Source: Dicyema japonicum (lineage: Eukaryota > Animalia > Dicyemida). Taken from it: a stretch of DNA of 64,000 nt. The stretch lies in contig RDEW01000018.1 in NCBI GenBank assembly GCA_011109175.1, positions 887,345 through 951,344 of the forward strand, read 5' to 3'. Below the pieces are notes generated by a model. It saw only the letters and a list, made by a program, of their open reading frames with translations. It made no database searches and was not told the origin of the DNA. The position numbers and the translations under genes were made by a program. Shown here in pieces: positions 3,141 to 61,196 of the stretch; the stretch's first letter is position 1; the number at the start of each line of letters is the position of its first letter.

Positions 3141-3311
3141 CGATTAAATTATTTGTTTTTGCAAGAAGGCCCATAGGATTCGATTTCTTCATATGATTAG
3201 AAACAAACATGTACAACACCACAACAATAATAAATTTCTAATTAAATTGAACACACTTGTCATAGATTAGAAAAATATTTTTCCAATAACCTTCCCAACA
3301 ACTTATCAGTT

Positions 3312-34949: not shown

Positions 34950-36830
34950 TCTTATATTATAGGTTCGATAACACTGCCTACCTTAATTTGGACCCTGCTG
35001 TTCTCAGCTACAGATTCCATCTTATGAGTCCGCAACTGTCTGGTGTGGCGAACACCATACTAGTGCATAGTAGAAGATGAAGACTCATGACTACCACGTT
35101 ATGCCTCCATACTTAGCATGCAAAAAAGATCTGATAGTGGCTAGGTGGGTTGCCCGTGTTTTCTCGGTCGTTATTATGGCGTGCTTCCTAGCACAAACAC
35201 TTCTCCCAGCTATCAGTGTGTCGTGCAATCGCATAAGGATCTGCTCACTTAGTTGGACTAATCCACAAGGCTAAATTTATCACGGGGTAAATATAGTCTT
35301 TCCTTGGATGCCAGCACATGGAAATTCAGTAATTTGTTTCTTCGTCTCAGGCATTATAAGGGACTTTGGAGTTTCGGTAACACCAAGATACTTATCCTTC
35401 GTGTTCCTCTAGGACTCTTACTAACTCGCTACATACTTGCGTGTTAGACGCAGACTTTGAATAATTCAAATCTAGTCCTATACTCTCAAAGAATTCACTG
35501 GCACAGACCACCATGGAGTAGAGCTCCTCGGCTGTTCTAGTATACATCTTCAGGTCATCGATAAAAAAGAAGGTGATTTGTACTGAAACAAACACCCTCA
35601 CAATCAACTGATATTTGCCAAACTGGGTCATTGGGGCGGTGACTCATTAGAAGAGAATTGGATTGGCCTCGACAAAGCTCATGACCTCATCAACCATCAA
35701 TTTGGTCATCAGCTTATACTGGGTTGGCATGAGGATATCGATCGATAATCTGCAGCAGACTGAGGGTTGTCCAGCTTTAGGATCAAATTGTTTCGGTGCA
35801 GGCCCAATCAGGAATTGTTTCTTGGTTAGTGATGTTTTCTGTAATACGCGACACATAGACTCGTGCAATGAAATGCATCTTCTGATAAATTATACACTTT
35901 ATCTACCCCGGTCGTTTCCCAATCGGAAAGACGTCTCACTATCGCCTCAAATTTCTTGCAAAATCGAAAATTCTGCAAGATTCCGCCAAGAAAGGAGCGG
36001 TGCTGTACGGGAAATTCCACGCATTACCGAGTCCTGTTGGAAACATGCACTATGGCCATTTTCGTGTAGGTGACGGTATAACAATCTGAGATTAAACTCA
36101 AGCAGATTATTTTTCCTCTTCTTCACTTACACCGACTTTCATGAGCATAGAGTTTCCTCTTATACACCATTATTGTCCTCCCCAATTTTTTAAGGTCGCA
36201 TTTGGGAATACGGAGTTTACTAAGTAACCCTTATACTATAGGCGGTGCTCTTCCTTTAACCCCTCTCGCCACACTTGTACTTGTACGTCGACTCCTAGTA
36301 GGTGATCTGTGCTGAATACATTACTAGGGAGATGTTACCCAGTGACTTTATTGGATTAGCTTCCATCGCATAAGCCACAGCCTTTTTAATACAGGTTAAC
36401 ACTACTCAGATAACTATACTACGAGGGATCTTGCGAGTAAATCTTTGGTCCCTAGGGAAAATCTGCCGTTGCAGCGAGATTCAGCGCAAAGCTTGAGCTG
36501 CAACGTATCACAGCTCTGATACTATTGCTTTCTTTGACAGTTGTGATCATCTGGTCCCCGCCCCCTTTAGAGCAGAACTGCTCGTCTGACCCTCTTTGTC
36601 TACAGCAATGTTCTTGAGTTCACTCAGATATAGCAGTACTGAATCTGCCACTGCAGAGCTCCGCCAAATATGGCCAGCCATTCAAGAGCATCCAGGATAG
36701 CATGCTACTTGGTATAGTTATATATTATACTAAAGATAGCTCTTGCCCATAGCGAGATCGATGTTCTGGAAGTGCTACCAGTATAAACGAATAAGATGTT
36801 CGAGAAAGCGAAGACTATAAGTAGAAAGTT
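34950..36830 (-). mobile_element. degenerate R4/Dong-like RLE retrotransposon (5' head to partial RT, internally deleted)
   Basis: ISLVMYSAQITY, LLEFNLRLLYRHL, YKLMTKLM, FFIDDLKMY, YKYLGV, KERLYLPRDK motifs in the order expected for this clade. Confidence 0.75.
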
Positions 36831-36866
36831 TTTTCAATTTTTTGAAAAAAATAAACATCATAAAAA

Positions 36867-36942
36867 TGGTCCCCGACCGGATTCGAACCGGCAACATAGT
36901 GACTTTGAAACCACTGCTCTAAAAATTGGAGCTACGAGGACC
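36867..36942 (-). tRNA. tRNA-like gene copy 1 (atypical anticodon arm, isotype undetermined)
   Basis: Cloverleaf: acceptor GGTCCTCG/CGGGGACC, D stem GCTC/GAGC, T arm GCCGG-TTCGAAT-CCGGT, then A plus a T-run; one D-loop difference from copies 2-8. Confidence 0.6.
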
Positions 36943-37051
36943 ATTTCTATTGTTCTATATTCCTATTAGCCTCTGCATCTCAATATCCTTGGTATGATCT
37001 CCCTTTTTCCAATCCTGGATCCTCAATTAACGAAACAGTAGTACAATAATC

Positions 37052-37960
37052 ATGCAACGAAATGTACAATCAATAAAACTTTATTCGAGTTGCATGCATC
37101 GTTGTGATTGTAGTGGTCGAAATACAAGACTCACTATCGAACAAAAAATGCAAATATTGCGTTATAATGACGACAACAACATATTATAATGCAAAGAATT
37201 GCTGATAAAATTCCTTTTTTAAAACTGAAAAATTGCAGAAAGACTGTTAACTTATCTAAATATGTCGCGAGTCAAATTTGAAACAATTCAAAACTAAAAA
37301 CTCTTCAACAAAAACAGTCAAAAATTTAAAAGTTTCCGCAACTGATGAAAAGCTCGTTAAGTGAATGGATTTGATAGATTCAAAAGGTTTACTTAATGTT
37401 TTTAAATTTTAAAGTGCATTATTGCCATGTAAAACAGAATTCTTTGTTAAGCTCTTTCTCTAGACTATTTCAAAAAATCATGGATTATAATCCATATTTA
37501 AGAAAATGGATTAATTTTAGATTAGGAAATTACACGGACAAATGTGTACACACAATAATGTCGACATTGAAAGGTTTTTCAAAGAATTTAAAGAGGTTTC
37601 AAAATCATATACCTGCATCAGATTTATTACCTGGATAAAACTGGTCTTTTTACAAGCTTTTTCCATCAAGAAGTAGTATTCGCAAGACTCCATTTGGAGG
37701 ATAAAAGAAATTAAAAGATAGAGTATCTGTGAAGTCATTCACAAATATTTTTGGAAATCATAAAATAATGGCGTTTATTCATTGGAAAATCAAAATGTAA
37801 AATGTTTCAGAAAATATGATCATCGGTATTCTGTTTCATCTTATAATGCCAAAGATCGTCTACTTTATTTTACGACGTATTATTCTTTAGTCTAGTCTCA
37901 TACCAGGCACAGAGACATCGATTCTGAGTTTCAAAAGTCAATAGGTTTGTTAGATGAAAA
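37052..37960 (+). mobile_element. 5' half of pogo/Tigger transposase in every array subunit (also 39171-40110 and all repeats)
   Basis: RLTIEQKMQILRY (HTH psq), KFPQLDEKLVEW (CENP-B HTH), IYNLD.TG, KDRVSVMLCTNMLGNHKLK (DDE_1 start); many stops and frameshifts. Confidence 0.8.
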
Positions 37961-38985
37961 GGCCTAATAATATTAACACCAGAGACTACGGTTAATCAAA
38001 CTAACTATTCACGTTATATCAGCACGCACTAGCATAGATCTCATCTTGGCCCGATGCTCTTTCCTCGACCCTAAACAACCACGTGTTGGTCGATTGACAT
38101 AAGGCAGCTTATATCAGATGCAGCAAGGGATGGTATTCTATCAAATTAGAGCAAAAGTAAAAGTCTTTAATTATCATTTAATAATCATGAAAATTAGCAG
38201 TCAATATTAAATTAATAATATTCCCAAATTTTAAGCCACATCACCCTTTAATATCAGGTCGATCACCTTTAGGCTTTTTATGCGTTTTTTACGATTTGAA
38301 TTTATTTTGGGTTCTGCTGAATTCTTATCAAAGTCAAGGAAGGAAACTAGTTTAAAACATTCGGTTAATTTTCCGTTGTAGATCTCCTACCATAGTAAGT
38401 AGGAAAACCTCAGGAACTTCCAAACATTTCGATACCTGTTCTAGCTCACTAGTTACACGGTATTGAGTTTCACTTTTTTTAGGAATCTTTAATATCTCAA
38501 TATTCAGAGTGTTAAAATTATCTACGTAATTCTCTACCCTATCAGTCATACTACTATTACTCACATCCGCCATACTACTTATTTGTTATTCAAGTGCTTC
38601 CAGCTCTGTCTGTCTCCATGCATTCATGGCTAAGATCTGCTCCCTCCATTTACGTGGAGGTCTGTTCTAGTACGTCAACTCAACGTAGGTGATCTGTTTT
38701 GGATACATCACATTGGAGATGTGACCAGATGATTTTACTGGCTAGTTTTGCCGGACTGACTATGCCACTGCCTAGCTTCGCCAAGTATAGCCAGCTATTC
38801 AAGAGCATCCAGGATAGCATGCTACTTGGGTATAGTTATATATTGTGCTAAAGATAGCTCTTGCCCAAATCGAGATCGATTTAATGGGAGTGGTACCAGT
38901 ATAAACGAATAAGATGTTCGAGTAAGCGAAGACTATAAGTAGAAAGTTTTTTCTATTTTTTGAAAAAATTTAAACATCAAAAAAA

Positions 38986-39061
38986 TGGTCCCCGACCGGA
39001 TTCGAACCGGCAACATAGTGACTTTGAAACCACTGCTCTAAACATTGGAGCTACGAGGACC
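38986..39061 (-). tRNA. tRNA-like gene copy 2
   Basis: Sequence ggtcctcgtagctccaatgtttagagcagtggtttcaaagtcactatgttgccggttcgaatccggtcggggacca. Confidence 0.6.
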
Positions 39062-42000
39062 ATTTCTATTGTTCTATATTCCTATTAGCCTCTGCATCTC
39101 AATATCCTTGGTATGATCTCCCTTTTTCCAATCCTGGATCCCCAATTAACGAAACAGTAGTACAATAATCATGCAACGAAATGTACAATCAATAAAACTT
39201 TATTCGAGTTGCATGCATCGTTGTGATTGTAGTGGTCGAAATACAAGACTTACTATTGAACAAAAAATGCAAATATTGCGTTATAATGACGGCAACAACA
39301 TATTATAATGCCAAAGAATTGCTGATAAATTTTCCTTTTTCTAAAGTGAACATTTGCCGGAAAACAGTTATCCTTATCTTAATATATCGAGAGTCAATTT
39401 TAAAACAATTCAAATCTAAAAACTTTTCAACAAAAACAGTCAAAAAGTAAAAGTTTCCCCAACTTGATGAAAAGCTTGTTGAGTGGATGGATTTGATGGA
39501 ATCAAAAAGCTTTCTTAAAGTTTTTTTAATTTTAAAGTGCATTAGTGCTATGTAAGGCAGAATATCCATTAAGATAAAATTCTTCGCTAAGAAACGATCT
39601 CTTGACTATTTCAAAAACTCTTATGGAGTTGTATAAAAATTTAAAATAAGAAATTAAATTCGGATTAGGGAATTACATGGACAAATGTGCACACACAAAA
39701 GCGTCGACATTGAAGGGTTTTTCAGATTTTCAAGAGGTTTCAAAATCATATACCTGCGATCAGATTTATAACTGGAAGAAAATGGGATTTTTAAAAGCTT
39801 ATTCCATCCAGAAGTATCTGCAAGAATCCATTCGGAGGATAAAAGAAATTCAAAGATAGAGTATCTGTGATGTTATGCACAAATATGTTAGGAAATCATA
39901 AATTAAAGCTCACTATTCATTGGAAAATCAAAAAAGTGCAAAGTGTTTCAAAAAATATTATTATCGGTGTTCTGTTTCGTATTACAGTGCCAAAGAGCGT
40001 CTACTTAATTTTACAGAGACATATTCTAAAGTCTACTGTCATAAGTGTCTCAGAGATATCGGTTCAGTGTTCTCCACAAATCAAAAGCTCCGTTACACTG
40101 AAAGCCTAATAATTTTAACACCAGAGACCATGGTTACACAAACTAACTTATCACGTGATTCCAGCACGCACAAGCATGGACCTCAATTTGTCACGATGCT
40201 CCTCCCTCGACCCCACACAAGCACGTATCGGTCGATTCACCTATGGTAGTTTACATCAAATGCAGCAAGGGAGGGTTTTCTAGCAATTTAAATCAATAGT
40301 AAAAGTCTTTAATTATCATTTAATTATCATGAAAATTAGCAGTCAATATTAAATTAATAAAAACATTCAAATCCTAAGCCACATCACCCTTTAATAATCA
40401 GGTCGATGCACTTTAGGCATACTTATGCGTTTTTACGTGTTGACTTTATTTTAGGTTCTGCTGAAATCCTATCCAAGACAAGGAAATCAAGCTCGTTTAA
40501 AACATTCGGTTGATTTTCCGTTTAGATCCTAACCATAGTAGACTCGAAAACCTCAGGAACTTCCACAACTTTCGATGCCTGTACTGGCTCATTTGTACAA
40601 CGGTATTGATTTTCACATTTTTCTTAGGAATCTTTAATTTATCCAAATTCAGACCATCAAAATTATCCACGTCATCCTCAGGTTTGCCAATTTCACTAAA
40701 TGGGTAAATAATCAAATAAATAGTTTATTCGGCTGAGTTAGTAGAATTTTGTCATCTTCAATCGGAATAGAAACTTGGGAGCAATTTTTCTCAATTCCAA
40801 CGTTCAGTCTTTTACCCCATTTGTTTACTAATCCACTTGTCTAAAACGTGTCTAAATAGCAGGAATCAGCTACCCATAGGAATCGGTATTTTCGTTTGAA
40901 CTTGATTAATCAGTGAATTCAACTCAGATCAGATATAGGTTCATAACATGCAGTTACTTCCTCCTATTTGAACAAATCACGTCAAAAACAATTTCCAAAC
41001 GGCTTCCAAGAAACAGCTCAATGGAAACATAATCGAAGGGAAGTAGATACTTCCTCCTCTTACTTCTAGTAACATAGAGGACAGGAAAGCGTCCATACTT
41101 CTTATCACTTCAACCACCAGACGGTCATAGTAAATACCTGCTTCAATAATGTGGTAATCCACTGTATGAACAGTGTGCACAAACCTAGTCACTATTTAAT
41201 GTCAGAGAAATTCACGAATCACATAAAGAAGTAGAAATAAATGGCACGCAGGAGAAAAAAACTGGGAGACTACAAGAGTTGGCGTTCTTCTAAATGACCA
41301 CCTGTAGGTTTTAATAGTTCTTATGAATGGGATCTGTCTCCTATGAAAATAACTTAGATTGAAAAATTAGTACAGGATTTCACGCAGTGAGAAATTTAGA
41401 GTAAGAACCAAGAAACTCCTGATCAATACGAAAAAATTAATAATTGACAGATTCACTTATCAAAAAAGTCTAATCAATCATCTTGATTTATTACATTCTA
41501 TAGTAAATTTTATTATAAAAGAATTTTTCCAATTTTTTATTAAGCTTTTTAAGAAAATCCTCATTTTTGGGGAAAACCTCAAAATTAGGGAATTTTACTT
41601 TATTTCGGGGTCGGACTTGAACATTTATGTTAAACCGTAGATGAGAAATTATTGACTCGACTATGAATAATGAGATTACTCGAAGACATATGAAATATCA
41701 ACAACCTATCGAATGTCAAGTCCATTTTACAAACAAAAAGTAGCGTGTTAAAATTATATACGTAATTCTCTACCCTATCAGTCATACTACTTCTACCCCA
41801 TCCGCCATACTACTTATTTGTTATTACAGTGCTTCATGCTCTGTCTGTCTCCATGCAATCATGGCAAAGAGCTGCTCCCTCCAATTACGTGGTGGTCTGT
41901 TCTAGTACGTCAACTCAACGTAGGTGATCTGTTCTGGATACATCACATTATAGATGTGACCAGATAATTTTACTGGCAGTTTTGCTGGACAGATTATGCC

Positions 42001-42218
42001 ACTGCAGAGCTCCTCCAATTATGGCCAGCCATTCAAGAGCATCCAGGATAGCATGCTACTTGGGTATAGTTATATATTGTGCTAAAAATAGCTCTTGCCC
42101 AAAGCGAGATCGATTTAATGGGAGTGGTACCAGTATAAACGAATAAGATGTTCGAGTAAGCGAGAACTATAAGTAGAAAGTTTTTTCTATTTTTTGAAAA
42201 ATTTAAACATCAAAAAAA

Positions 42219-42294
42219 TGGTCCCCGACCGGATTCGAACCGGCAACATAGTGACTTTGAAACCACTGCTCTAAACATTGGAGCTACGAGGACC
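42219..42294 (-). tRNA. tRNA-like gene copy 3
   Basis: Identical to copy 2. Confidence 0.6.
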
Positions 42295-44322
42295 ATTTCT
42301 ATTGTTCTATTTTCCTATTAGCCTCTGCATCTCAATATCCTTGGTATGATCTCCCTTTTTCCAATCCTGGATCCCCAATTAACGAAACAGTAGTACAATA
42401 ATCATGCAACGAAATGTACAATCAATAAAACTTTATTCAAGTTGCATGCATCGTTGTGATTATAGTGGTCGAAATACAAGACTCACTATCGAACAAAAAA
42501 TGCAAATATTGCGTTATAATGACGACAACAACATATTATAATGCAAAGAATTGCTGATAAATTTTCTTTTTTCAAAACCGAAAATTTGCAGAAAGACTGT
42601 TAACTTATCTTAATATGTCGCGAGTCAAATTTGAAACAATTCAAAACTAAAAACTCTTCAACAAAAACGTCAAAAATTAAAAAGTTTCCGCAACATGATG
42701 AAAAGCTTGTCAAGTGAATGGATTTGATAGATTCAAAAGGTTTACTTAATGTTTTTAAATTTTAAAGTGCATTATTGCCATGTAAAACAGAATTCTTTGT
42801 TAAGCTCTTTCTCTAGACTATTTCAAAAAATCATGGATCATAATCCATATTTAAGAAAATGGATTAATTTTAGATTAGGAAATTACACGGACAAATGTGT
42901 AAACACAATAATGTCGACATTGAAAGGTTTTTCAAAAAATTTAAAGAGGTTTCAAAATCATATACCTGCATCAGATTTATTACCTGGATAAAACTGGGCT
43001 TTTTACAAGCTTTTTCCATCAAGAAGTAGTATTCGCAAGACTCCATTTGGAGGATAAAAGAAATTCAAAGATAGAGTATCTGTGAAGTCATTCACAAATA
43101 TTTGTGGAAATCATAAAATAATGGCGTTTATTCATTGGAAAATCAAAATGTAAATGTTTCAGAAAATATGATCATCGGTATTCTGTTTCGTCTTATAATG
43201 CCAAAGATCGTCTACTTTATTTTACGACGTATTATTCTTTAGTCTAGTCTCATACCAGGCACAGAGACATCGATTCTGAGTTTCAAAAGTCAATAGGTTT
43301 GTTAGATGAAAAGGCCTAATAATATTAACACCAGAGACTACGGTTAATCAAACTAACTATTCACGTTATATCAGCACGCACTAGCATAGATCTCATCTTG
43401 GCCCGATGCTCTTTCCTCAACCCTAAACAACCACGTGTTGGTCGATTGACATAAGGCAGCTTATATCAGATGCAGCAAGGGATGGTATTCTATCAAATTA
43501 GAGCAAAAGTAAAAGTCTTTAATTATCATTTAATAATCATGAAAATTAGCAGTCAATATTCCCAAATTTTAAGCCACATCACCCTTTAATATCAGTTCGA
43601 TCACCTTTAGGCTTTTTATGCGTTTTTTACCATTTGAATTTATTTTGGGTTCTGCTGAATTCTTATCAAAGTCAAGGAAGGAAACTAGTTTAAAACATTC
43701 GGTTAATTTTCCGTTGTAGATCTCCTACCATAGTAAGTAGGAAAACCTCAGGAACTTCCAAACATTTCGATACCTGTTCTAGCTCACTAGTTACACGGTA
43801 TTGAGTTTCACTTTTTTTAGGAATCTTTAATATCTCAATATTCAGAGTGTTAAAATTATCTACGTAATTCTCTACCCTATCAGTCATACTACTATTACCC
43901 CATCCGCCATACTACTTATTTGTTATTCCAGTGCTTCCAGCTCTGTCTGTCTCCATGCATTCATGGCTAAGATCTGCTCCCTCCATTTACGTGGAGGTCT
44001 GTTCTAGTACGTCAACTCAACGTAGGTGATCTGTTTTGGATACATCACATTGGAGATGTGACCAGATGATTTTACTGGCTAGTTTTGCCGGACTGACTAT
44101 GCCACTGCCTAGCTTCGCCAAGTATAGCCAGCTATTCAAGAGCATCCAGGATAGCATGCTACTTGGGTATAGTTATATATTGTGCTAAAGATAGCTCTTG
44201 CCCAAAGCGAGATCGATTTTCTGGGAGAGGTACCAGTATAAACGAATAAGATGTTCGAGTAAGCGAAGACTATAAGAAGAAAGTTTTTTCTATTTTTTGA
44301 AAAAATTTAAACATCAAAAAAA

Positions 44323-44398
44323 TGGTCCCCGACCGGATTCGAACCGGCAACATAGTGACTTTGAAACCACTGCTCTAAACATTGGAGCTACGAGGACC
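44323..44398 (-). tRNA. tRNA-like gene copy 4
   Basis: Identical to copy 2. Confidence 0.6.
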
Positions 44399-47300
44399 AT
44401 TTCTATTGTTCTATATTCCTATTAGCCTCTGCATCTCAATATCCTTGGTATGATCTCCCTTTTTCCAATCCTGGATCCCCAATTAACGAAACAGTAGTAC
44501 AATAATCATGCAACGAAATGTACAATCAATAAAACTTTATTCGAGTTGCATGCATCGTTGTGATTGTAGTGGTCGAAATACAAGACTCACTATCGAACAA
44601 AAAATGCAAATATTGCGTTATAATGACGACAACAACATATTATAATGCCAAAGAATTGCTGATAAATTTTCCTTTTTCTAAAGTGAACATTTGCCTGAAA
44701 ACAGTTAACCTTATCTTAATATATCGAGAGTCAATTTTAAAACAATTCAAATCTAAAAACTTTTCAACAAAAACAGTCAAAAAGTAAAAGTTTCCCCAAC
44801 TTGATGAAAAGCTTGTTGAGTGGATGGATTTGATGGAATCAAAAAGCTTTCTTAAAGTTTTTTTAATTTTAAAGTGCATTAGTGCTATGTAAGGCAGAAT
44901 ATCCATTAAGATAAAATTCTTCGCTAAGAAACGATCTCTTGACTATTTCAAAAACTCTTATGGAGTTGTATAAAAATTTAAAATAAGAAATTAAATTCGG
45001 ATTAGGAAATTACATGGACAAATGTGCACACACAAAAGCGTCGACATTGAAGGGTTTTTCAGATTTTCAAGAGGTTTCAAAATCATATACCTGCGATCAG
45101 ATTTATAACTGGAAGAAAATGGGATTTTTAAAAGCTTATTCCATCCAGAAGTATCTGCAAGAATCCATTCGGAGGATAAAAGAAATTCAAAGATAGAGTA
45201 TCTGTGATGTTATGCACAAATATGTTAGGAAATCATAAATTAAAGCTCACTATTCATTGGAAAATCAAAAAAGTGCAAAGTGTTTCAAAAAATATTATTA
45301 TCGGTGTTCTGTTTCGTATTACAGTGCCAAAGAGCGTCTACTTAATTTTACAGAGACATATTCTAAAGTCTACTGTCATAAGTGTCTCAGAGATATCGGT
45401 TCAGTGTTCTCCACAAATCAAAAGCTCCGTTACACTGAAAGCCTAATAATTTTAACACCAGAGACCATGGTTACACAAACTAACTTATCACGTGATTCCA
45501 GCACGCACAAGCATGGACCTCAATTTGTCACGATGCTCCTCCCTCGACCCCACACAAGCACGTATCGGTCGATTCACCTATGGTAGTTTACATCAAATGC
45601 AGCAAGGGAGGGTTTTCTAGCAATTTAAATCAATAGTAAAAGTCTTTAATTATCATTTAATTATCATGAAAATTAGCAGTCAATATTAAATTAATAAAAA
45701 CATTCAAATCCTAAGCCACATCACCCTTTAATAATCAGGTCGATGCACTTTAGGCATACTTATGCGTTTTTACGTGTTGACTTTATTTTAGGTTCTGCTG
45801 AAATCCTATCCAAGACAAGGAAATCAAGCTCGTTTAAAACATTCGGTTGATTTTCCGGTTAGATCCTAACCATAGTAGACTCGAAAACCTCAGGAACTTC
45901 CACAACTTTCGATGCCTGTACTGGCTCATTTGTACAACGGTATTGATTTTCACATTTTTCTTAGGAATCTTTAATTTATCCAAATTCAGACCATCAAAAT
46001 TATCCACGTCATCCTCAGGTTTGCCAATTTCACTAAATGGGTAAATAATCAAATAAATAGTTTATTCGGCTGAGTTGGTAGAATTTTGTTATCTTCAATC
46101 GGAATAGAAACTTGGGAGCAAATTTGCTCAATTCCAACGTTCAGTCTTTTACCCCATTTGTTTACTAATCCACTTGTCTAAATCGAGTCTAAATAGCAGG
46201 AATCAGCTACCCATAGGAATCGGTATTTTCGTTTGAACTTGATTAATCAGTGAATTCAACTCAGATCAGATATAGGTTCATAACATGCAGTGACTTCCTC
46301 CTCTTTGAACAAATCACGTCAAAAACAATTTCCAAACGGCTTCCAAGAAACAGCTCAATGGAAACATAATCGAAAGGAGGAAGGGAAGTAGATGCTTCCT
46401 CCTTTACTTTTAGTAACATAGAGGACAGGAAAGCGTCCATACTTGCTTATCACTTCAACCACCAGACGGTCATAGTAAATACCTGCTTCAATAATGTGGT
46501 AATCCACTGTATGAACAGTGTGCACAAACTGAGTCACTATTTAATGTCAGAGAAATTCACGAATCACATAAAGAAGTAGAAATAAATGGCACGCAGGAGA
46601 AAAAAAATGGGAGACTACAGGAGTTGGCGTTCTTCTAAATGACCACCTGTAGGTTTTAATAGTTCTTATGAATGGGATCTGTCTCCTATGAAAATAACTT
46701 AGATTGAGAAATTAGTACAGGATTTCACGCAGTGTGAAATTTAGAGTAAGAACCAAGAAACTCCTGATCAATACGAAAAAATTAATAATTGACAGATTCA
46801 CTTATCAAAAAAGTCTAATCAATCATCTTGATTTATTACATTCTATAGTAACTTTTATTATAAAAGAATTTTTCCAATTTTTTATTAAGCTTTTTAAGAA
46901 AATTTGCATTTTTCGGGAAAACCTCAAAATTAGGGAATTTTCCTTTATATCGGGGTCGGACTTGAACATTTATGTTGAACCGTAGACGAGAAATTATTGA
47001 CTCGACTATGAATGATGAGGTTACTCGAAGACATATGAAATATCAACAACCTATCGAATGTCAAGTCCATTTTACAAACAAAAAGTAGCGTGTTAAAATT
47101 ATATACGTAATTCTCTACCCTATCAGTCATACTACTTTTACCCCATCCGCCATACTACTTATTTGTTATTACAGTGCTTCATGCTCTGTCTGTCTCCATG
47201 CAATCATGGCAAAGAGCTGCTCCCTCCATTACGTGGTGGTCTGTTCTAGTACGTCAACTCAACGTAGGTGATCTGTTCTGGATACATCACATTATAGATG

Positions 47301-47562
47301 TGACCAGATAATTTTACTGGCAGTTTTGCTGGACAGATTATGCCACTGCAGAGCTCCGCCAATTATGGCCAGCCATTCAAGAGCATCCAGGATAGCATGC
47401 TACTTGGGTATAGTTATATATTGTGCTAAAGATAGCTCTTGCCCAAAGCGAGATCGATTTAATGGGAGTGGTACCAGTATAAACGAATAAGATGTTCGAG
47501 TAAACGAGAACTATAAGTAGAAAGTTTTTTCTATTTTTTGAAAAATTTAAACATCAAAAAAA

Positions 47563-47638
47563 TGGTCCCCGACCGGATTCGAACCGGCAACATAGTGACT
47601 TTGAAACCACTGCTCTAAACATTGGAGCTACGAGGACC
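47563..47638 (-). tRNA. tRNA-like gene copy 5
   Basis: Identical to copy 2. Confidence 0.6.
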
Positions 47639-49670
47639 ATTTCTATTGTTCTATTTTTCCTATTAGCCTCTGCATCTCAATATCCTTGGTATGATCTCCC
47701 TTTTTCCAATCCTGGATCCCCAATTAACGAAACAGTAGTACAATAATCATGCAACGAAATGTACAATCAATAAAACTTTATTCAAGTTGCATGCATCGTT
47801 GTGATTATAGTGGTCGAAATACAAGACTCACTTTCGAACAAAAAATGCAAATATTGCGTTATAATGACGACAACAACATATTATAATGCAAAGAATTGCT
47901 GATAAATTTTCTTTTTTAAAACTGAAAAATTGCAGAAAGACTGTTAACTTATCTAAATATGTCGCGAGTCAAATTTGAAACAATTCAAAACTAAAAACTC
48001 TTCAACAAAAACAGTCAAAAATTAAAAGTTTCCGTAACTGATGAAAAGCTCGTTAAGTGAATGAATTTGATAGATTCAAAAGGTTTACTTAATGTTTTTA
48101 AATTTTAAAGTGCATTATTGCCATGTAAAACAGAATTCTTTGTTAAGCTCTTTCTCTAGACTATTTCAAAAAATCATGGATCATAATCCATATTTAAGAA
48201 AATGGATTAATTTTAGATTAGGAAATTACACGGACAAATGTGTACACACAATAATGTCGACATTGAAAGGTTTTTCAAAAAATTTAAAGAGGTTTCAAAA
48301 TCATATACCTGCATCAGATTTATTACCTGGATAAAACTGGGCTTTTTACAAGCTTTTTCCATCAAGAAGTAGTATTCGCAAGACTCCATTTGGAGGATAA
48401 AAGAAATTCAAAGATAGAGTATCTGTGAAGTCATTCACAAATATTTTGGAAATCATAAAATAATGGCGTTTATTCATTGGAAAATCAAAATATAAGATGT
48501 TTCAAAAAATATGATCATCGGTATTCTGTTTCGTCTTATAATGCCAAAGATCGTCTACTTTATTTTACGACGTATTATTCTTTAGTCTAGTCTCATACCA
48601 GGCACAGAGACATCGATTCTGAGTTTCAAAAGTCAATAGCTTTGTTAGATGAAAAGGCCTAATAATATTAACACCAGAGACTACGGTTAATCAAACTAAC
48701 TATTCACGTTATATCAGCACGCACTAGCATAGATCTCATCTTGGCCCGATGCTCTTTCCTCGACCCTAAACAACCACGTGTTGGTCGATTGACATAAGGC
48801 AGCTTATATCAGATGCAGCAAGGGATGGTATTCTATCAAATTAGAGCAAAAGTAAAAGTCTTTAATTATCATTTAATAATCATGAAAATTAGCAGTCAAT
48901 ATTAAATTCCCAAATTTTAAGCCACATCACCCTTTAATATCAGGTCGATCACCTTTAGGCTTTTTATGCGTTTTTTACGATTTGAATTTATTTTGGGTTC
49001 TGCTGAATTCTTATCAAAGTAAAGGAAGGAAACTAGTTTAAAACATTCGGTTAATTTTCCGTTGTAGATCTCCTACCATAGTAAGTAGGAAAACCTCAGG
49101 AACTTCCAAACATTTCGATACCTGTTCTAGCTCACTAGTTACACGGTATTGAGTTTCACTTTTTTTAGGAATCTTTAATATCTCAATATTCAGAGTGTTA
49201 AAATTATCTACGTAATTCTCTACCCTATCAGTCATACTACTATTACTCCATCCGCCATACTACTTATTTGTTATTCCAGTGCTTCCAGCTCTGTCTGTCT
49301 CCATGCATTCATGGCTAAGATCTGCTCCCTCCATTTACGTGGAGGTATGTTCTAGTACGTCAACTCAACGTAGGTGATCTGTTTTGGATACATCACATTG
49401 GAGATGTGACCAGATGATTTTACTGGCTAGTTTTGCCGGACTGACTATGCCACTGCCTAGCTTCGCCAAGTATAGCCAGCTATTCAAGAGCATCCAGGAT
49501 AGCATGCTACTTGGGTATAGTTATATATTGTACTAAAGATAGCTCTTGCCCAAATCGAGATCGATTTTCTGGGAGTGGTACCAGTATAAACGAATAAGAT
49601 GTTCGAGTAAGCGAAGACTATAAGTAGAAAGTTTTTTCTATTTTTTGAAAAAATTTAAACATCAAAAAAA

Positions 49671-49746
49671 TGGTCCCCGACCGGATTCGAACCGGCAACA
49701 TAGTGACTTTGAAACCACTGCTCTAAACATTGGAGCTACGAGGACC
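49671..49746 (-). tRNA. tRNA-like gene copy 6
   Basis: Identical to copy 2. Confidence 0.6.
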
Positions 49747-52700
49747 ATTTCTATTGTTCTATATTCCTATTAGCCTCTGCATCTCAATATCCTTGGTATG
49801 ATCTCCCTTTTTCCAATCCTGGATCCCCAATTAACGAAACAGTAGTACAATAATCATGCAACGAAATGTACAATCAATAAAACTTTATTCGAGTTGCATG
49901 CATCGTTGTGATTGTAGTGGTCGAAATACAAGACTTACTATTGGACAAAAAATGAAAATATTGCGTTATAATGACGGCAACAACATATTATAATGCCAAA
50001 GAATTGCCGATAAATTTTTCTTTTTCTAAAGTGAACATTTGCCGAAAACAGTTAACCTTATCTTAATATATCGCGAGTCAATTTTAAAACAATTCAAATC
50101 TAAAAACTTTTCAACAAAAACAGTCAAAAAGTAAAAGTTTCCCCAACTTGATGAAAAGCTTGTTGAGTGGATGGATTTGATGGAATCAAAAAGCTTTCTT
50201 AAAGTTTTTTTAATTTTAAAGTGCATTAGTGCTATGTAAGGCAGAATATCCATTAAGATAAAATTCTTCGCTAAGAAACGATCTCTTGACTATTTCAAAA
50301 ACTCTTATGGAGTTGTATAAAAATTTAAAATAAGAAATTAAATTCGGATTAGGAATTACATGGACAAATGTGCACACACAAAAAGCGTCGACATTGAAGG
50401 GTTTTTCAGATTTTCAAGAGGTTTCAAAATCATATACCTGCGATCAGATTTATAACTGGAAAAAATGGGATTTTTAAAAGCTTATTCCATCCAGAAGTAT
50501 CTGCAAGAATCCATTCGGAGGATAAAAGAAATTCAAAGATAGAGTATCTGTGATGTTATGCACAAATATGTTAGGAAATCATAAATTAAAGCTCACTATT
50601 CATTTGAAAATCAAAAAAGTGCAAAGTGTTTCAAAAAATATTATTATCGGTCTTCTGTTTCGTATTACAGTGCCAAAGAGCGTCTACTTAATTTTACAGA
50701 AACATATTCTAAAGTCTACTGTCATAAGTGTCTCAGAGATATCGGTTCAGTGTTCTCCACAAATCAAAAGCTCCGTTACACTGAAAGCCTAATAATTTTA
50801 ACACCAGAGACCATGGTTACACAAACTAACTTATCACGTGATTCCAGCACGCACAAGCATGGACCTCAATTTGTCACGATGCTCCTCCCTCGACCCCACA
50901 CAAGCACGTATCGGTCGATTCACCTATGGTAGTTTACATCAAATGCAGCAAGGGAGGGTTTTCTAGCAATTTAAATCAATAGTAAAAGTCTTTAATTATC
51001 ATTTAATTATCATGAAAATTAGCAGTCAATATTAAATTAATAAAAACATTCAAATCCTAAGCCACATCACCCTTTAATAATCAGGTCGATGCACTTTAGG
51101 CATACTTATGCGTTTTTACGTGTTGACTTTATTTTAGGTTCTGCTGAAATCCTATCCAAGACAAAAAAATCAAGCTCGTTTAAAACATTCGGTTGATTTT
51201 CCGGTTAGATCCTAACCATAGTAGACTCGAAAACCTCAGGAACTTTTACAACTTTCGATGCCTGTACTGGCTCATTTGTACAACGGTATTGATTTTCACA
51301 TTTTTCTTAGGAATCTTTAATTTATCCAAATTCAGACCATCAAAATTATCCACGTCATCCTCAGGTTTGCCAATTTCACTAAATGGGTAAATAATCAAAT
51401 AAATAGTTTATTCGGCTGAGTTGGTAGAATTTTGTTATCTTCAATCGGAATAGAAACTTGGGAGCAAATTTGCTCAATTCCAATGTTCAGTCTTTTACCC
51501 CATTTGTTTACTAATCCACTTGTCTAAAACGAGTCTAAATAGCAGGAATCAGCTACCCATAGGAATCGGTATTTTCGTTTGAACTTGATTAATCAGTGAA
51601 TTCAACTCAGATCAGATATAGGTTCATAACATGCAGTTACTTCCTCCTATTTGAACAAATCACGTCAAAAACAATTTCCAAACGGCTTCCAAGAAACAGC
51701 TCAATGGAAACATAATCGAAGGGAAGTAGATACTTCCTCCTCTTACTTCTAGTAACATAGAGGACAGGAAAGCGTCCATACTTGCTTATCATTTCAACCA
51801 CCAGACGGTCATAGTAAATACCTGCTTCAATAATGTGGTAATCCACTGTATGAACAGTGTGCACAAACCTAGTCACTATTTAATGTCAGAGAAATTCACG
51901 AATCACATAAAGAAGTAGAAATAAATGGCACGCAGGAGAAAAAAACTGGGAGACTACAGGAGTTGGCGTTCTTCTAAATGACCACCTGTAGGTTTTAATA
52001 GTTCTTATGAATGGGATCTGTCTCCTATGAAAATAACTTAGATTGAGAAATTAGTACAGGATTTCACGCAGTGAGAAATTTAGAGTAAGAACCAAGAAAC
52101 TCCTGATCACTAAGAAAAAATTAATAATTGAGAGATTCACTTATCAAAAAAGTCTAATCAATCATCTTGATTTATTACATTCTATAGTAACTTTTATTAT
52201 AAAAGAATTTTTCCAATTTTTTATTAAGCTTTTTAAGAAAATTTGCATTTTTCGGGAAAACCTCAAAATTAGGGAATTTTCCTTTATATCGGGGTCGGAC
52301 TTGAACATTTATGTTAAACCGTAGATGAGAAATTATTGACTCGACTATGAATGATGAGGTTACTCGAAGACATATGAAATATCAACAACCTATCGAATGT
52401 CAAGTCCATTTTACAAACAAAAAGTAGCGTGTTAAAATTATATACGTAATTCTCTACCCTATCAGTCATACTACTTTTACCCCATCCGCCATACTACTTA
52501 TTTGTTATTCCAGTGCGTCATGCTCTGTCTGTATCCATGCAATCATGGCAAAGAGCTGCTCCCTCCATTTACGTGGTGGTCTGTTCTAGTACGTCAACTC
52601 AACGTAGGTGATCTGTTCTGGATACATCACATTATAGATGTGACCAGATAATTTTACTGGCAGTTTTGCTGGACAGATTATGCCACTGCAGAGCTCCGCC

Positions 52701-52902
52701 AATTATGGCCAGCCATTCAAGAGCATCCAGGATAGCATGCTACTTGGGTATAGTTATATATTGTGCTAAAGATAGCTCTTGCCCAAAGCGAGATCGATTT
52801 TCTGGGAGTGGTACTAGTATAAACGAATAAGATGTTCGAGTAAGCGAGAACTATAAGTAGAAAGTTTTTTCTATTTTTTGAAAAATTTAAACATCAAAAA
52901 AA

Positions 52903-52978
52903 TGGTCCCCGACCGGATTCGAACCGGCAACATAGTGACTTTGAAACCACTGCTCTAAACATTGGAGCTACGAGGACC
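52903..52978 (-). tRNA. tRNA-like gene copy 7
   Basis: Identical to copy 2. Confidence 0.6.
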
Positions 52979-55015
52979 ATTTCTATTGTTCTATTTTCCT
53001 ATTAGCCTCTGCATCTCAATATCCTTGGTATGATCTCCCTTTTTCCAATCCTGGATCCCCAATTAACGAAACAGTAGTACAATAATCATGCAACGAAATG
53101 TACAATCAATAAAACTTTATTCGAGTTGCATGCATCGTTGTGATTATAGTGGTCGAAATACAAGACTCACTATCGAACAAAAAATGCAAATATTGCGTTA
53201 TAATGCCGACAACAACATATTATAATGCAAAGAATTGCTGATAAATTTTCTTTTTTAAAACTGAAAATTTGCAGAAAGACTGTTAACTTATCTTAATATG
53301 TCGCGAGTCAAATTTGAAACAATTCAAAACTAAAAACTCTTCAACAAAAACGTCAAAAATTAAAAAGTTTCCGCAACTGATGAAAAGCTTGTCAAGTGAA
53401 TGGATTTGATAGATTCAAAAGGTTTACTTAATGTTTTTAAATTTTAAAGTGCATTATTGCCATGTAAAACAGAATTCTTTGTTAAGCTCTTTCTCTAGAC
53501 TATTTCAAAAAATCATGGATCATAATCCATATTTAAGAAAATGGATTAATTTTAGATTAGGAAATTACACGGACAAATGTGTACACAATAATGTCGACAT
53601 TGAAAGGTTTTTCAAAAATTTAAAGAGGTTTCAAAATCATATACCTGCATCAGATTTATTACCTGGATAAAACTGGGCTTTTTACAAGCTTTTTCCATCA
53701 AGAAGTAGTATTCGCAAGACTCCATTTGGAGGATAAAAGAAATTCAAAGATAGAGTATCTGTGAAGTCATTCACAAATATTTGTGGAAATCATAAAATAA
53801 TGGCGTTTATTCATTGGAAAATCAAAATGTAAGATGTTTCAAAAATATGATCATCGGTATTCTGTTTCGTCTTATAATGCCAAAGATCGTCTACTTTATT
53901 TTACGACGTATTATTCTTTAGTCTAGTCTCATACCAGGCACAGAGACATCGATTCTGAGTTTCAAAAGTCAATAGCTTTGTTAGATGAAAAGGCCTAATA
54001 ATATTAACACCAGAGACTACGGTTAATCAAACTAACTATTCACGTTATATCAGCACGCACTAGCATAGATCTCATCTTGGCCCGATGCTCTTTCCTCGAC
54101 CCTAAACAACCACGTGTTGGTCGATTGACATAAGGCAGCTTATATCAGATGCAGCAAGGGATGGTATTCTATCAAATTAGAGCAAAAGTAAAAGTCTTTA
54201 ATTATCATTTAATAATCATGAAAATTAGCAGTCAATATTAAATTAATAATATTCCCAAATTTTAAGCCACATCACCCTTTAATATCAGGTCGATCACCTT
54301 TAGGCTTTTTATGCGTTTTTTACGATTTGAATTTATTTTGGGTTCTGCTGAATTCTTATCAAAGTAAAGGAAGGAAACTAGTTTAAAACATTCGGTTAAT
54401 TTTCCGTTGTAGATCTCCTACCATAGTAAGTAGGAAAACCTCAGGAACTTCCAAACATTTCGATACCTGTTCTAGCTCACTAGTTACACGGTATTGAGTT
54501 TCACTTTTTTTAGGAATCTTTAATATCTCAATATTCAGAGTGTTAAAATTATCTACGTAATTCTCTACCCTATCAGTCATACTACTATTACCCCATCCGC
54601 CATACTACTTATTTGTTATTCCAGTGCTTCCAGCTCTGTCTGTCTCCATGCATTCATGGCTAAGATCTGCTCCCTCCATTTACGTGGAGGTCTGTTCTAG
54701 TACGTCAACTCAACGTAGGTGATCTGTTTTGGATACATCACATTGGAGATGTGACCAGATGATTTTACTGGCTAGTTTTGCCGGACTGACTATGCCACTG
54801 CCTAGCTTCGCCAAGTATAGCCAGCTATTCAAGAGCATCCAGGATAGCATGCTACTTGGGTATAGTTATATATTGTGCTAAAGATAGCTCTTGCCCAAAT
54901 CGAGATCGATTTAATGGGAGTGGTACCAGTATAAACGAATAAGATGTTCGAGTAAGCGAAGACTATAAGTAGAAAGTTTTTTCTATTTTTTGAAAAAATT
55001 TAAACATCAAAAAAA

Positions 55016-55091
55016 TGGTCCCCGACCGGATTCGAACCGGCAACATAGTGACTTTGAAACCACTGCTCTAAACATTGGAGCTACGAGGACC
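55016..55091 (-). tRNA. tRNA-like gene copy 8
   Basis: Identical to copy 2. Confidence 0.6.
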
Positions 55092-55749
55092 ATTTCTATT
55101 GTTCTATATTCCTATTAGCCTCTGCATCTCAATATCCTTGGTATGATCTCCCTTTTTCCAATCCTGGATCCCCAATTAACGAAACAGTAGTACAATAATC
55201 ATGCAACGAAATGTACAATCAATAAAACTTTATTCGAGTTGCATGCATCGTTGTGATTGTAGTGGTCGAAATACAAGACTCACTATCGAAAAAAAATGCA
55301 AATATTGCGTTATAATGACGACAACAACATATTATAATGCCAAAGAATTGCTGATAAATTTTCATTTTTCTAAAGTGAACATTTGCCGAAAACAGTTAAC
55401 CTTATCTTAATATATCGCGAGTCAATTTTAAAACAATTCAAATCTAAAAACTTTTCAACAAAAACAGTCAAAAAGTAAAAGTTTCCCCAACTTGATAAAA
55501 AGCTTGTTGAGTGGATGGATTTGATGGAATCAAAAAGCTTTCTTAAAGTTTTTTTAATTTTAAAGTGCATTAGTGCTATGTAAGGCAGAATATCCATTAA
55601 GATAAAATTCTTCGCTAAGAAACGATCTCTTGACTATTTCAAAAACTCTTATGGAGTTGTATAAAAATTTAAAATAAGAAATTAAACGGGCAACATAATA
55701 GTACGTCATACCACTGCTAACAAATAAAAAAACGAATATTAGCAAAAAA

Positions 55750-56569: not shown

Positions 56570-56845
56570 CCAGAAGGAAAATGGATGTTCTTGAAGTGCT
56601 ACCAGCATTTACAAATAAGATGCTCGAGAAAGCGAAGACTATAAATAGAAAGTTTTTTTTTATTTCTTTAAAAAACTTTATACATTAAAAATACAATTAA
56701 TAGTCCTCAATCTGATTTGAACCGGACAATTATAGCGTTAACCACTGCTCTAATCATTGTAGGTAGGAGGACCATTTCTTTTGTTCAATAAGTCTTTGAT
56801 TATCATTTAATATCACAAAATAGCAGTTAATAAATTAATAATAAT
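56570..56845 (-). pseudogene. degenerate copy of the tRNA-like gene plus R4-like 5' head
   Basis: 56701-56775 retains ttagagcagtggt and ggttcaaatc; flanked by the same R4-head and AT-island sequences as the array. Confidence 0.6.
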
Positions 56846-58096: not shown

Positions 58097-61000
58097 TTTA
58101 TTTAAGCACTTCACGAGAGCCTTATTAATTATAGCCCCGCATGTGCAGCAAAAGAAACAAGGTTAGATGTCATCCTTTTCCATGCTCTCCTGTTCATAGC
58201 CAAGGCTCTCATGCTGTCCAGGTCGTCGGCATTTTTAGATTTTTTTGATCTTGACCAGGTCTTTTTGTAAGACTATTGGCAGTGTTGTTCTTGGTCTTCC
58301 ACGATAGCGGCCTTCTTGACTAACATAGTATGTTTCCATAGATATGTTCGGTGGGGATGTTAATTCCATCCTCAGCACGTGTACGAAGAGCCTCCATCGG
58401 GATTCCAGTACTTCTAAGCTGATAGGTATAGTGCTGCATCTCTTATATAAAGCGTTCCTCGATATTCTCGTAGGCCAAGTAGTTCCTGTTATTTTTCTCA
58501 GCTGACCTCTGTGGAACGAGTCTAGTTTTTCCATATCCGCTGATGAGGTCGCCCAAGTTCCAGCGTTATATAAAAGTACGGGTTTTATGAATGAGTCGTA
58601 TAATAGGATTCTCATTTTCGTGTCGATGCCTTTTTGATTGAGCCATAAATTCTTCAGTTTATATAACGCAGCATTGGCTAGAGTTTTCCTACGTAAAATA
58701 TCTTCGCTATCTCCCAAAAGTGAACCGAGTTTCTTTACTTGTCGCCACTTCTCTTCTAGGACGTTACTCATCCTTCTTATCTCTGTGAGTTCTGTTTTCT
58801 CTGTTCACAGTAAGAAACCATTTCCCTAGTACATCTGGTGCTTTTTCTAATAGGTTTTCCAGGACCTCTTTGTCTTCAGAAATTAGGTCTACATCGTCCG
58901 CGTAGATTACTTCTTCCGTCTTTCCTTGGTATGACGGTCTAAGTTCCCTCATAGCGGCTTCCAAATAAATTGTGAATAGTAGAGGAGAAAGAGAGTCTCC
59001 TTGTGGAGTGCCCGTATTTGTTTCAAATTTTCTTGAATAGGTTTTTCCGACTCTCACAAGGAGCTCAGTGTTAGAAAGTAGAATTCGGATCATCCTTAGA
59101 CTCGATTCATCAAGAAATCCGCTCAGTACCCCCATTAATTTGTTCCTGTTAACCGTATCAAAAGCTCTTGATAGGTCAATTCCCAGAATATTGGTGGCGT
59201 TACGGTATCTTTGATATGTTGCACACCTCCATCTGTGACTCCAGACCGCATCAGCTGTGGATCTCCCTTCTCGAAAACCACTTTGACTATCTGGTAGGTA
59301 TTTGTAAGCAGATCCTTTTATTCGTTCAAGCACAATGTTTGCCAAGACTTTGCGTAATGAATTTAGTAGTATGATGGGTCGCAAATTTTCGAGCGGTCCT
59401 CTGTTTTTGTTGTTTTTTGTATGGGGATTAGTAGTCCCGTACCCAGAGGTAGAGTTGAGTTAGTTGAAAACATTTCATTTAGTAGTGTAGCGATTTTTTC
59501 AAAAAGGAGGTCAGGGCCGTATTTCAGTAGTTCTGGGTTTATCGCATCTGGTCCGGGGCTTCTGTTATTCTTGAGTTTTCGGCAGGCCGTTTTGATTTCC
59601 TCGGCCGTGATTGGTATCTTAAGGGGTCTTGGCCTTCCATCAAATGGGTGGATTTCTATGGTTTTGATGTTGAAAAGCTTCTCAAAGTGAGCCGCGATGG
59701 CTTCAGTTTGTTCTTTGGTGTTCAGTATCAGCTTACCGTTCTCGTCTTTTATGGTTAGTCGACTTCGGTTTGTTCGCCGCAGCAAACGGGCAGCGACGTA
59801 CACCTGTGCGTTGTCTTTCACTTTGTTTACTTCTTCTATACAGGAGCTATTTCTTCTATGAAAAGCTTCTTGTTCAGACCCTTTATTTTTCTTCTGACAC
59901 GTTGTCTTTCGCCTTGAAGGGCTTTTATCGCATTAGTGTCAGTGGCATTTGATTTTCTCATATTTATTTCTTTTAGACTTTTCGCAAGCTCAGGAACATC
60001 TGGATGAATAGCCTTCAGGTGCATTTTACTATTCTCCCTTTTGCCAAGACATGCTTCAGCAGCTTCGTTGATGGTGTCCTTTGTGCGTTTCCAGGCGTCT
60101 TCTAGCGTGGTATCCACCAATACGTCCTGCAAATTAGTCTGAATGTATTGTTGATATCTCTCAGTAGTCTCCGGTTGAGAAATCAGCCTTTCAGTCGCGT
60201 AGTCGCCTCTGATTTTCTCAAATTCGTGATTTTTTGCATTCTGTATTTAATGGCATGTTTTTTCAGGGTGAAGGTCGCAATAACCATCTTGTGGTCGCTG
60301 ACAGTCGTCGAGCCTTCATATGAACGTGCGTTTACTAGAAGGTGTTTGTCTTTAGCCCGGCATATGACATAATCGATTTGGTTGTATATTGGGACCAGCT
60401 TTCCTTCTGAGTTCCTTCGCTTCCCCATCCACGTAGTTTTGTGGCAGGCAGGATGCGTAAATGCAGTATTGCATAGGAAAAGGTTGTTTGCCATACAAAA
60501 GTGACCAAGTATTGTCCCGGGTAAATTTCTTATTCCACGTCCATGTTCTCCCAAGAAAACATCATCCGGGTTATTCTTCATCCCGACTTTTGCATTCAAA
60601 TCCCAGCAATGAGTATTAGTGATGACGACTCATATTCGTTGTACGTCCGTAACAGTGCTGAATAGAAGTCGTCTAGTTCTGTCGGATCTTTCGCTACTCT
60701 CCCGCAGTGTGGCGCATAAACATTTACAATTGTCAGAAAGCTCTTCGAAGGTGGTAAGTCGTTTAGCCGGATTTGTATAACACAGATCCTGTCATTCACA
60801 CTCCATATACGGTGGACTGCACTTGTCAACTTTGAGTGGATGGCAAATCCAAGTCCATAATGTTTTGAGTCGCTTGGCTGACATATAATTCGATATTCGC
60901 CAAAGTTTTCATCAAGGCTACAAGTAACTTTCGTCTCTTGTAGGCACCCAATAGATACGTCGTATCTCTCCAGGTCATCACAGAGAATCTTCCTCGACCA

Positions 61001-61196
61001 TGTCGTAGATAAGCCTCTAGCATTGAACGTAAGGACTTTTAGACGAGATGCATCGCTTTTGTATCCATTGCCTTTTAGACATTTTTCTCAATTGCGATCC
61101 AATCAAGAAACGAAGCACGTCACCACCTCACCAAAAAAATCGAACCTGCCTGAAGAGGCTGGGGAACAGGCAGTCGAGGAAAGTTGTTGATTATTA
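58038..61196 (+). repeat. 59-bp target-site duplication (58038-58096 and 61138-61196)
   Basis: aatcgaacctgcctgaagaggctggggaacaggcagtcgaggaa(g/a)gttgttgattatta flanks the RTE element with one mismatch. Confidence 0.9.
58097..61137 (-). mobile_element. near full-length RTE-clade LINE (single APE-RT ORF)
   Basis: LKVLTFNARG, CLQET, GDLNAKVG, QIDY, SDH (APE); QSGFREGRST, IDLSRAFDTV, QGDSLSP, YADD (RT); RWRLFVHVLR; (TAAA) tail; breaks checked are single-base indels. Confidence 0.92.

Follow-up and report, generated by a model that had tools for sequence, protein, structure and literature searches.

A tandemly amplified gene of the dicyemid Dicyema japonicum, apparently derived from a tRNA, probably yields a tRNA-like RNA that is expressed and matured and takes no part in decoding. 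The gene studied here lies on the minus strand at 38986..39061 of the window, by which we mean the whole stretch of 64,000 nucleotides that was analyzed (contig RDEW01000018.1). It belongs to a family with 15 members genome-wide: eight genes in one tandem array (array 1), three in a second (array 2), two decayed duplicates, and two dispersed retrocopies, L001 and L002. A DNA search retrieved 13 of these copies, and a covariance model built from them added 2 more, both decayed. The searches covered the D. japonicum assembly of 67,542,437 bases in 377 pieces. The published description of this assembly gives 67.5 Mb, 377 scaffolds, and 36.7% GC, and the genome paper mentions neither tRNAs nor transposable elements (PMC6736024).

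Anatomy of the gene and its canonical relatives

The target gene is a 76-nt cloverleaf with A as the discriminator. Its acceptor stem has 8 bp (GGUCCUCG/CGGGGACC), including one U.G pair, and is followed by the unpaired A, directly after which a run of seven T residues (T7; 38979..38985, minus strand) forms a Pol III-type terminator. Two linker bases lead into a 4-bp D stem, whose 9-nt loop contains no GG; G18G19 are absent, as is position 26 between the D stem and the anticodon stem. The anticodon arm pairs AGUGG with UCACU (5 bp) and closes an 8-nt loop, UUUCAAAG. The variable region has 5 nt, and the T arm consists of 5 bp (GCCGG/CCGGU) and the canonical T loop UUCGAAU, with a perfect B box. 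The MFE structure was identical to the centroid structure (-27.8 kcal/mol, z = -3.6), and 0 of 200 shuffled sequences were as stable. The original prediction, made from the letters alone, had described this arrangement well: its 8-bp acceptor, perfect B box and T arm, oligo-T terminator, GG-less D loop, and AGTGG/TCACT arm around an 8-nt loop containing UCA all reappear in the sequence and its folds, and its comparison of the 8+5 stack with bacterial tRNA-Sec, minus the long variable arm, was correct.

The Rfam tRNA model RF00005 gave the target gene 38.5 bits, which is above the gathering score of 29 and below every full-length canonical tRNA match of the genome (61 matches at 49.5 to 77 bits, 58 of them scoring at least 59; a 62nd match was partial). 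ARAGORN labeled it "tRNA-??? (tcaa)", with a 4-base anticodon. The tRNA set of the genome is normal: all 58 canonical tRNAs examined combine a 7-bp acceptor with a GG-containing D loop and an anticodon loop of 7 nt, and most of them have a T-run within a few bases 3' of the gene. The target gene departs from them in acceptor length, anticodon loop length, G18G19, and score range, and it shares with them the arrangement of the T-run and an A/T-rich upstream flank. The 8-bp acceptor is present in all gene copies of the family. An 8/5 acceptor domain that stands without the other features of tRNA-Sec is an unusual design for a nuclear gene of a eukaryote.

Several known RNAs share part of this design. 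The extra G-1:C73 pair of tRNA-His shifts 5' processing by one nucleotide. In bacteria and organelles, this encoded pair sits atop a 7-bp acceptor to give 8 bp, as seen here. In the present family, however, an unpaired A follows the eighth pair, before the CC(A) that appears to be added, there is no GUG anticodon, and the gene is an animal nuclear gene. A 13-bp acceptor domain is otherwise a feature of tRNA-Sec, with a 9/4 arrangement in the eukaryotic type, and an 8-bp stem weakens EF-Tu binding (PMC7609411). The target gene resembles tRNA-Sec (8/5 in bacteria, 9/4 in eukaryotes and archaea) in its 13-bp acceptor/T stack (8+5) and in the UCA of the array-1 loop, whereas tRNA-Sec has a long variable arm, a 6-bp D stem with a 4-nt loop, and a 7-nt anticodon loop in place of the 5-nt variable region, the 4-bp D stem with a 9-nt loop, and the 8-nt anticodon loop found here.

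The genome encodes a canonical tRNA-Sec elsewhere (L080:1501-1587; G000:C223:342051-342136), which scored 75.7 bits with RF01852 and was called SeC, with anticodon tca, by ARAGORN. Of the selenocysteine system, at least the tRNA is retained in this reduced genome of a parasite. In the genome search with RF01852, the matches were this true tRNA-Sec and tRNA-Ser-like genes, and none of the family loci was among them. A tRNA-Sec identity of the target gene was rejected on the lack of an RF01852 match, the lack of a long variable arm, and the 4-bp D stem.

When the family model was applied to the canonical tRNAs, tRNA-Asn(GUU) scored best (36 to 48 bits), followed by tRNA-Tyr (31 to 43 bits) and by tRNA-Ile and tRNA-Arg (about 32 bits). 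Pairwise alignment to the family gave 53 to 55 identities for tRNA-Asn and 49 to 53 for tRNA-Ile. The likeness to tRNA-Ile proposed originally is therefore real but weak, at 51 to 52 identities, and the closest canonical relative, by these comparisons, is tRNA-Asn(GUU). A degenerate copy of the tRNA-Asn(GUU) type was also observed (L090/L103; G000:C46:1002263-1002337). Its T stem is broken, and no T-run lies next to it. Its GG-less D-loop variant is identical to that of the family, and the 3' half is also held in common; no flank homology between this copy and the family was found. The copy may be related to the ancestor from which the family arose. Descent from tRNA-Asn is what we infer from about 70% identity and the common D-loop variant, the flanks not being homologous. 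The tRNA-Asn genes have G as the discriminator, followed by A. Along the proposed path, the discriminator G would have changed to C and paired with a G at position -1, giving the eighth acceptor pair (-1 and 73 as G:C), and the following A would have become the new discriminator. G18G19, position 26, and a defined anticodon would have been lost.

Among the other tRNA genes, a tRNA-Trp(CCA) is present, and L060 (G000:C223:477300-477371) combines a tRNA-Phe(GAA)-type body with the anticodon GAG (Leu) at 55.5 bits. This locus sits in a tRNA-Phe gene cluster (C223:465-477 kb), with a T-run that starts one base past the gene, and represents a tRNA with a shifted anticodon or else a recent pseudogene.

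Tandem arrays and their surroundings

Array 1 is a higher-order tandem repeat at 36711..55660 (no strand assigned), with a unit of about 5.34 kb that carries two tRNA-like genes at spacings of about 2.1 and 3.2 kb. Within the window, it holds seven identical copies and one 1-nt variant. Besides the target gene, the identical copies are found at 42219..42294, 44323..44398, 47563..47638, 49671..49746, 52903..52978, and 55016..55091, all on the minus strand. The variant (36867..36942, minus strand) has a single G-to-T substitution in the D loop, scored 35.8 bits with Rfam, and was missed by ARAGORN. The B box, the T7 terminator, and the cloverleaf are intact in all eight copies. Since the two gene types are 97 to 98% identical over their ±200-bp flanks, the 76/76 identity within array 1 is uninformative, being expected from age alone. 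Judged from these sequences, array 1 is a young tandem amplification.

Array 2 comprises three copies that follow on the same contig after a further 7 to 22 kb. The one nearest to array 1 (61921..61997, minus strand) has the body of the array-1 genes with the anticodon arm replaced (7-nt loop AUGAGGU) and was labeled "tRNA-Leu(gag)" by ARAGORN. One decayed member lies at the edge of array 1 (56701..56773, minus strand; z = -1.4), and the second, L093, is on another contig. The flanks of both are 76 to 79% identical to those of the arrays, and both have lost the cloverleaf fold. The array genes give a clean cloverleaf, with z at about -3.5, and neither the retrocopies nor the decayed copies fold as such. 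L001 and L002 have only the tRNA-like body in common with the arrays. Exact-motif scans of genome and metagenome contig collections, which are narrow scans of collections that exclude the organism's own genome, returned no relatives outside D. japonicum.

Two flanks accompany the genes in the arrays only. The upstream flank of about 125 bp (39062..39186, minus strand) extends to window position ~39187, where dispersed copies of the neighboring sequence stop, and the downstream flank of about 235 bp (38744..38978, minus strand) reaches to query position 236, where dispersed matches begin. Past the downstream flank are pieces of other repeats. On the upstream side, the tested part of the sequence (39187..39700, plus strand) is the end part of a dispersed pogo/Tc5-type DNA transposon remnant, and a better-preserved copy of this element (L102:3237-3663) carries HTH_Tnp_Tc5 and DDE_1 domains. 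In both arrays, every tRNA-like gene has the end of the pogo/Tc5-type family about 125 bp upstream, and this element is repeated in each array unit. Short ORFs in the array repeat unit matched no Pfam family, and very few long ORFs are present in the window. The gene lies between remnants of transposons, and unequal crossing-over probably produced the two tandem arrays from it.

A young LINE is located near array 2 (58235..61139, minus strand), with an RVT_1 domain at 58764-59384. Its family has about 945 candidates, mostly 91 to 99% identical, and many copies share the same 5' end. A Pfam search of this LINE and the flanking ORFs found RVT_1 only and no endonuclease domain, so an R4/Dong (RLE) type was left unconfirmed. 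About 780 bp separate the array-2 gene from the downstream point at which the dispersed LINE copies begin; thus, the LINE is a neighbor, and the gene is not its head. The proposal that the tRNA-like gene is a part or the 5' head of the LINE was rejected on this ground, and the genome search with the family model found no copies at other LINEs.

Two further assignments were discarded. A search of the genome with an 18-nt pattern (up to 2 mismatches) found no primer-binding site complementary to the RNA 3' end plus CCA; the only matches were the two retrocopies themselves and one unrelated motif at six places. With no complementary site in the genome, a role as a retroelement primer tRNA was rejected. 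Membership in a tRNA-derived SINE family was likewise rejected, as the defining dispersed copies with a head, a body, and a tail between target site duplications (TSDs) are missing. The genes have their own T7 terminator, and the 15 copies consist of 13 DNA-level duplicates and 2 one-off chimeras with different partners.

Chimeric retrocopies and the ends of the RNA

L001 interrupts the ORF2 region of a LINE copy; its 415-bp block is flanked by an 8-bp TSD and comprises, in order, the tRNA-like body, CC(A), a SINE-like repeat at full length, and a tail of (TTA)n. A single base separates the first 8-mer from the start of the body, whose 3' end reads as the paired CC, the unpaired A, and CCA, followed by the 5' end of the SINE-like repeat. 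The 8-mer is repeated after the (TTA)n tail, with the host LINE resuming behind it. Two other copies of the host LINE, L099 and L100, represent the empty site: the 8-mer occurs once, and the 415-bp block is absent. The SINE-like partner measures about 340 bp (L078:2860-3197, minus strand in L078; others, for example, in L064-L070) and has about 2000 candidate copies at 97 to 99% identity; its head is tRNA-related, an A-rich stretch lies inside, and the tail is (TTA)n. A search with a restricted pattern showed the family RNA as the only tRNA-type sequence joined through CCA to the 5' end of the full-length SINE-like repeat.

In L002, a 9-bp TSD encloses the body with C(C) after the A, fused to a 5'-truncated repeat with an A-rich tail. 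The partner is the last 110 to 130 bases of a second dispersed repeat (L002:277-400; also in L071-L077; about 440 candidates, 81 to 98% identity, A-rich tail), other copies of which continue upstream of the junction. Two details of the insertion sites were also observed. Comparison of L078 near 3276-3290 with L099 and L100 near 1917-1935 showed that the host locus of L001 is without 7 bases upstream of the first 8-mer, and one extra base stands between the TSD and the first G in L001 and likewise in L002.

Both copies lack the T-run, start within one base of the GG, and end after the discriminator A. Both lie in the sense orientation on the 5' side of a tailed transposable-element fragment. 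With TSDs around the whole chimera, sense orientation, and a 3' tail in both, and with an empty site for L001, they were classified as chimeric retrocopies. The same sense architecture of small RNA and LINE is known from U6/LINE-1 chimeras and is ascribed to template switching during target-primed reverse transcription; mammalian tRNA/L1 chimeras are mostly half-length and antisense (PMC13174262). L001 and L002 resemble the U6/LINE-1 chimeras (PMC13174262) in their full-length, sense small RNA at the 5' side, tailed transposable-element part at the 3' side, and TSDs, and they differ in that the small RNA is tRNA-like, is joined via CC(A), and has a SINE-like and another repeat as partners. A LINE reverse transcriptase would have copied the SINE or repeat RNA and then jumped to the 3' end of the tRNA-like RNA, twice and independently.

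The retrocopies suggest that the RNA was matured with its 8-bp stem and was CCA-tailed. For the germ-line RNA, they imply that it began at the first G, that its 3' end was trimmed back to the A, and that C residues were added as by a CCA-adding enzyme. Of the added residues, only the CC of L001 and the C of L002 can be assigned without ambiguity, since the base that follows may in each case derive from the fused partner, and a small chance is left that the added C residues stem from non-templated addition by the reverse transcriptase. Most probably, transcription and maturation of the RNA followed the tRNA pattern, with its 5' end formed at the GG, its U-rich trailer cut after the A, and C or CC(A) added. 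The original prediction had named two observations that would speak against it. The covariance score is indeed pseudogene-like; as to a lack of mature CCA-tailed RNA, the two TSD-flanked retrocopies suggest otherwise.

Both retrocopies carry the 7-nt loop UUAAAAG, and neither of them recorded the array-1 variant. In having a tRNA-like fold that is apparently matured and CCA-tailed with no decoding role, the RNA resembles mascRNA. The latter is cut from a long Pol II transcript, whereas the RNA described here would come from a gene that stands alone, contains its promoter boxes, and ends in a T-run terminator of its own.

Loop history, selection, and competing readings

Four different anticodon loops occur within the family. 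The 8-nt loop is restricted to array 1, L001 and L002 have the 7-nt UUAAAAG, and the array-2 genes have AUGAGGU or AUGACGU, also of 7 nt. In array 2, the anticodon arm prefers to form an 8-bp hairpin with a 3-nt loop (MFE). Between the two arrays, at least 8 of the 13 anticodon-arm positions differ, compared with 8.8% in the flanks (P = 3e-6), and only 2 of the 63 body positions outside the anticodon arm do so. The anticodon arm is, in these alignments, the least conserved part of the family. Since both independent retrocopies combine UUAAAAG with the acceptor state of array 2, the 7-nt loop is taken as the older state of the array-1 lineage. With the loops this variable and a canonical tRNA-Sec elsewhere in the genome, the UCA-containing 8-nt loop is best read as a recent change spread by tandem duplication and not as a conserved decoding device. 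It would have arisen from UUAAAAG and spread with the amplification of array 1.

This loop history is the main argument against UCA or UCAA having a conserved decoding function. A decoding tRNA with an expanded loop, serving as a UGA suppressor or as a quadruplet (+1 frameshift) reader of the UUGA type, could draw on the UCA/UCAA in the middle of the array-1 loop, on eight gene copies with a B box and a terminator, and on retrocopies that point to CCA addition. Four-base reading is possible for engineered and suppressor tRNAs whose anticodon loop has 8 nt. However, suppressors of the sufD type, which share with array 1 the 8-nt loop and, by the ARAGORN call, the 4-base anticodon, differ from canonical, chargeable tRNAs by a single inserted base. 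In array 1, the 8-nt loop sits on a body that is non-canonical throughout, and the loop varies between paralogues. The main identity elements of tRNA-Asn, the GUU anticodon and G73, are gone. A normal tRNA-Sec serves UGA, and the array-2 genes close the arm as a hairpin. In addition, the 8-bp acceptor is reported to weaken binding of the standard elongation factor (PMC7609411). The suppressor or frameshift tRNA contained in the original prediction is thus very improbable, given a loop confined to array 1, a tRNA-Sec elsewhere, a score below all full-length canonical matches, and the missing position 26 and G18G19. The two other proposals made there, an amplified pseudogene and a non-translational tRNA-like RNA, both fit the evidence.

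As the anticodon is not conserved, the RNA is most likely an expressed tRNA relic rather than a new reader of stop codons or frameshifts. That it is non-decoding is what its 13-bp acceptor/T domain, missing elbow contacts, and drifting anticodon arm would imply. The gene was accordingly placed in the class of tRNA pseudogenes or tRNA-like genes, outside the tRNA-Sec and SINE families, in each of which it failed at least one defining test, and probably outside the suppressor tRNAs. Eukaryotic tRNA pseudogenes, look-alikes, and tandem arrays resemble it in their tRNA origin, low scores, TE-rich setting, tandem gain of copies, and decayed members. It differs from them in its intact cloverleaf, B box, and terminator, its regular 8/5 domain, and the genomic signs of maturation and CC(A) addition.

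Selection on the body was rejected as a demonstrated property. Outside the anticodon arm, the body was better conserved between the arrays than the flanks, and the difference was not significant (P = 0.08). Among nine distinct family sequences, 94.7% of the pair cells are standard pairs, and the covariation was not above that of shuffled alignments, in which the observed values were reached in 41 to 168 of 500 trials. The youth of array 1 also counted against such a claim. In the array genes, every acceptor-stem change keeps the pairing (U-A to U.G and C-G to U.G), and L093 has a C-G double change in the acceptor stem. Together with the clean array folds, these pairing-preserving changes are hints of constraint and were not counted as evidence of function.

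These hints are what a functional, non-translational tRNA-like RNA would build on, in which the 8/5 body is kept by selection and the anticodon is not needed. Possible roles include a partner or decoy of the LINE reverse transcriptase, a source of small RNAs, and a chromatin-organizing TFIIIC/Pol III site. The clean cloverleaf of the array genes, which the retrocopies and decayed copies do not have, would agree with such a role, as would the paired state kept through all array acceptor-stem changes and the L093 double change, the 2/63 body differences against 8.8% in the flanks, and the singular CCA fusion to the SINE-like repeat found in the restricted pattern search. However, none of the tests was significant, the identity of the array-1 copies is explained by their youth, and the two DNA-level duplicates decayed at the rate of their flanks. 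Nor did the genome contain a primer-binding site, or public contigs a relative, in the exact-motif scans. A functional role of this kind is therefore rather unlikely. The array copies might instead be silent DNA relics, with only an earlier UUAAAAG master gene expressed and the arrays formed by satellite-like amplification. In both retrocopies, loop and acceptor are indeed in the older state, the lack of GG in the D loop weakens the A box, and the arrays sit in debris of transposable elements, with decayed copies among them. Against this stand the B box, T7 terminator, and cloverleaf that are intact in all eight array-1 copies, the very few changes between the array genes and the source state of the retrocopies, and an upstream flank as A/T-rich as that of canonical tRNA genes. 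We consider silence of the arrays unlikely.

The reading that we favor, and hold to be probable, is a lineage-specific nuclear gene of the Pol III type in a dicyemid, derived from a tRNA, with an RNA that would be expressed, matured, and non-decoding. A bolder proposal is that the 8/5 RNA is a working, dicyemid-specific tRNA-like molecule, either charged as a low-level reader of UGA or four bases or serving as a dedicated partner in LINE/SINE reverse transcription. We give this only a slim chance; if true, this would be the first case in eukaryotes, outside tRNA-Sec, of an RNA with a 13-bp acceptor domain that is known to mature and to be used.

If the favored reading is correct, a 13-bp acceptor domain can arise in an animal nuclear tRNA-derived gene through the G-1:C73 pair alone, and the maturation machinery appears to follow the longer stem. 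A four-base "tcaa" call multiplied by an array would not amount to quadruplet or stop decoding unless the loop is conserved among paralogues. Furthermore, chimeric retrocopies would provide a genomic record of the mature ends of small RNAs in cases where RNA data are lacking.
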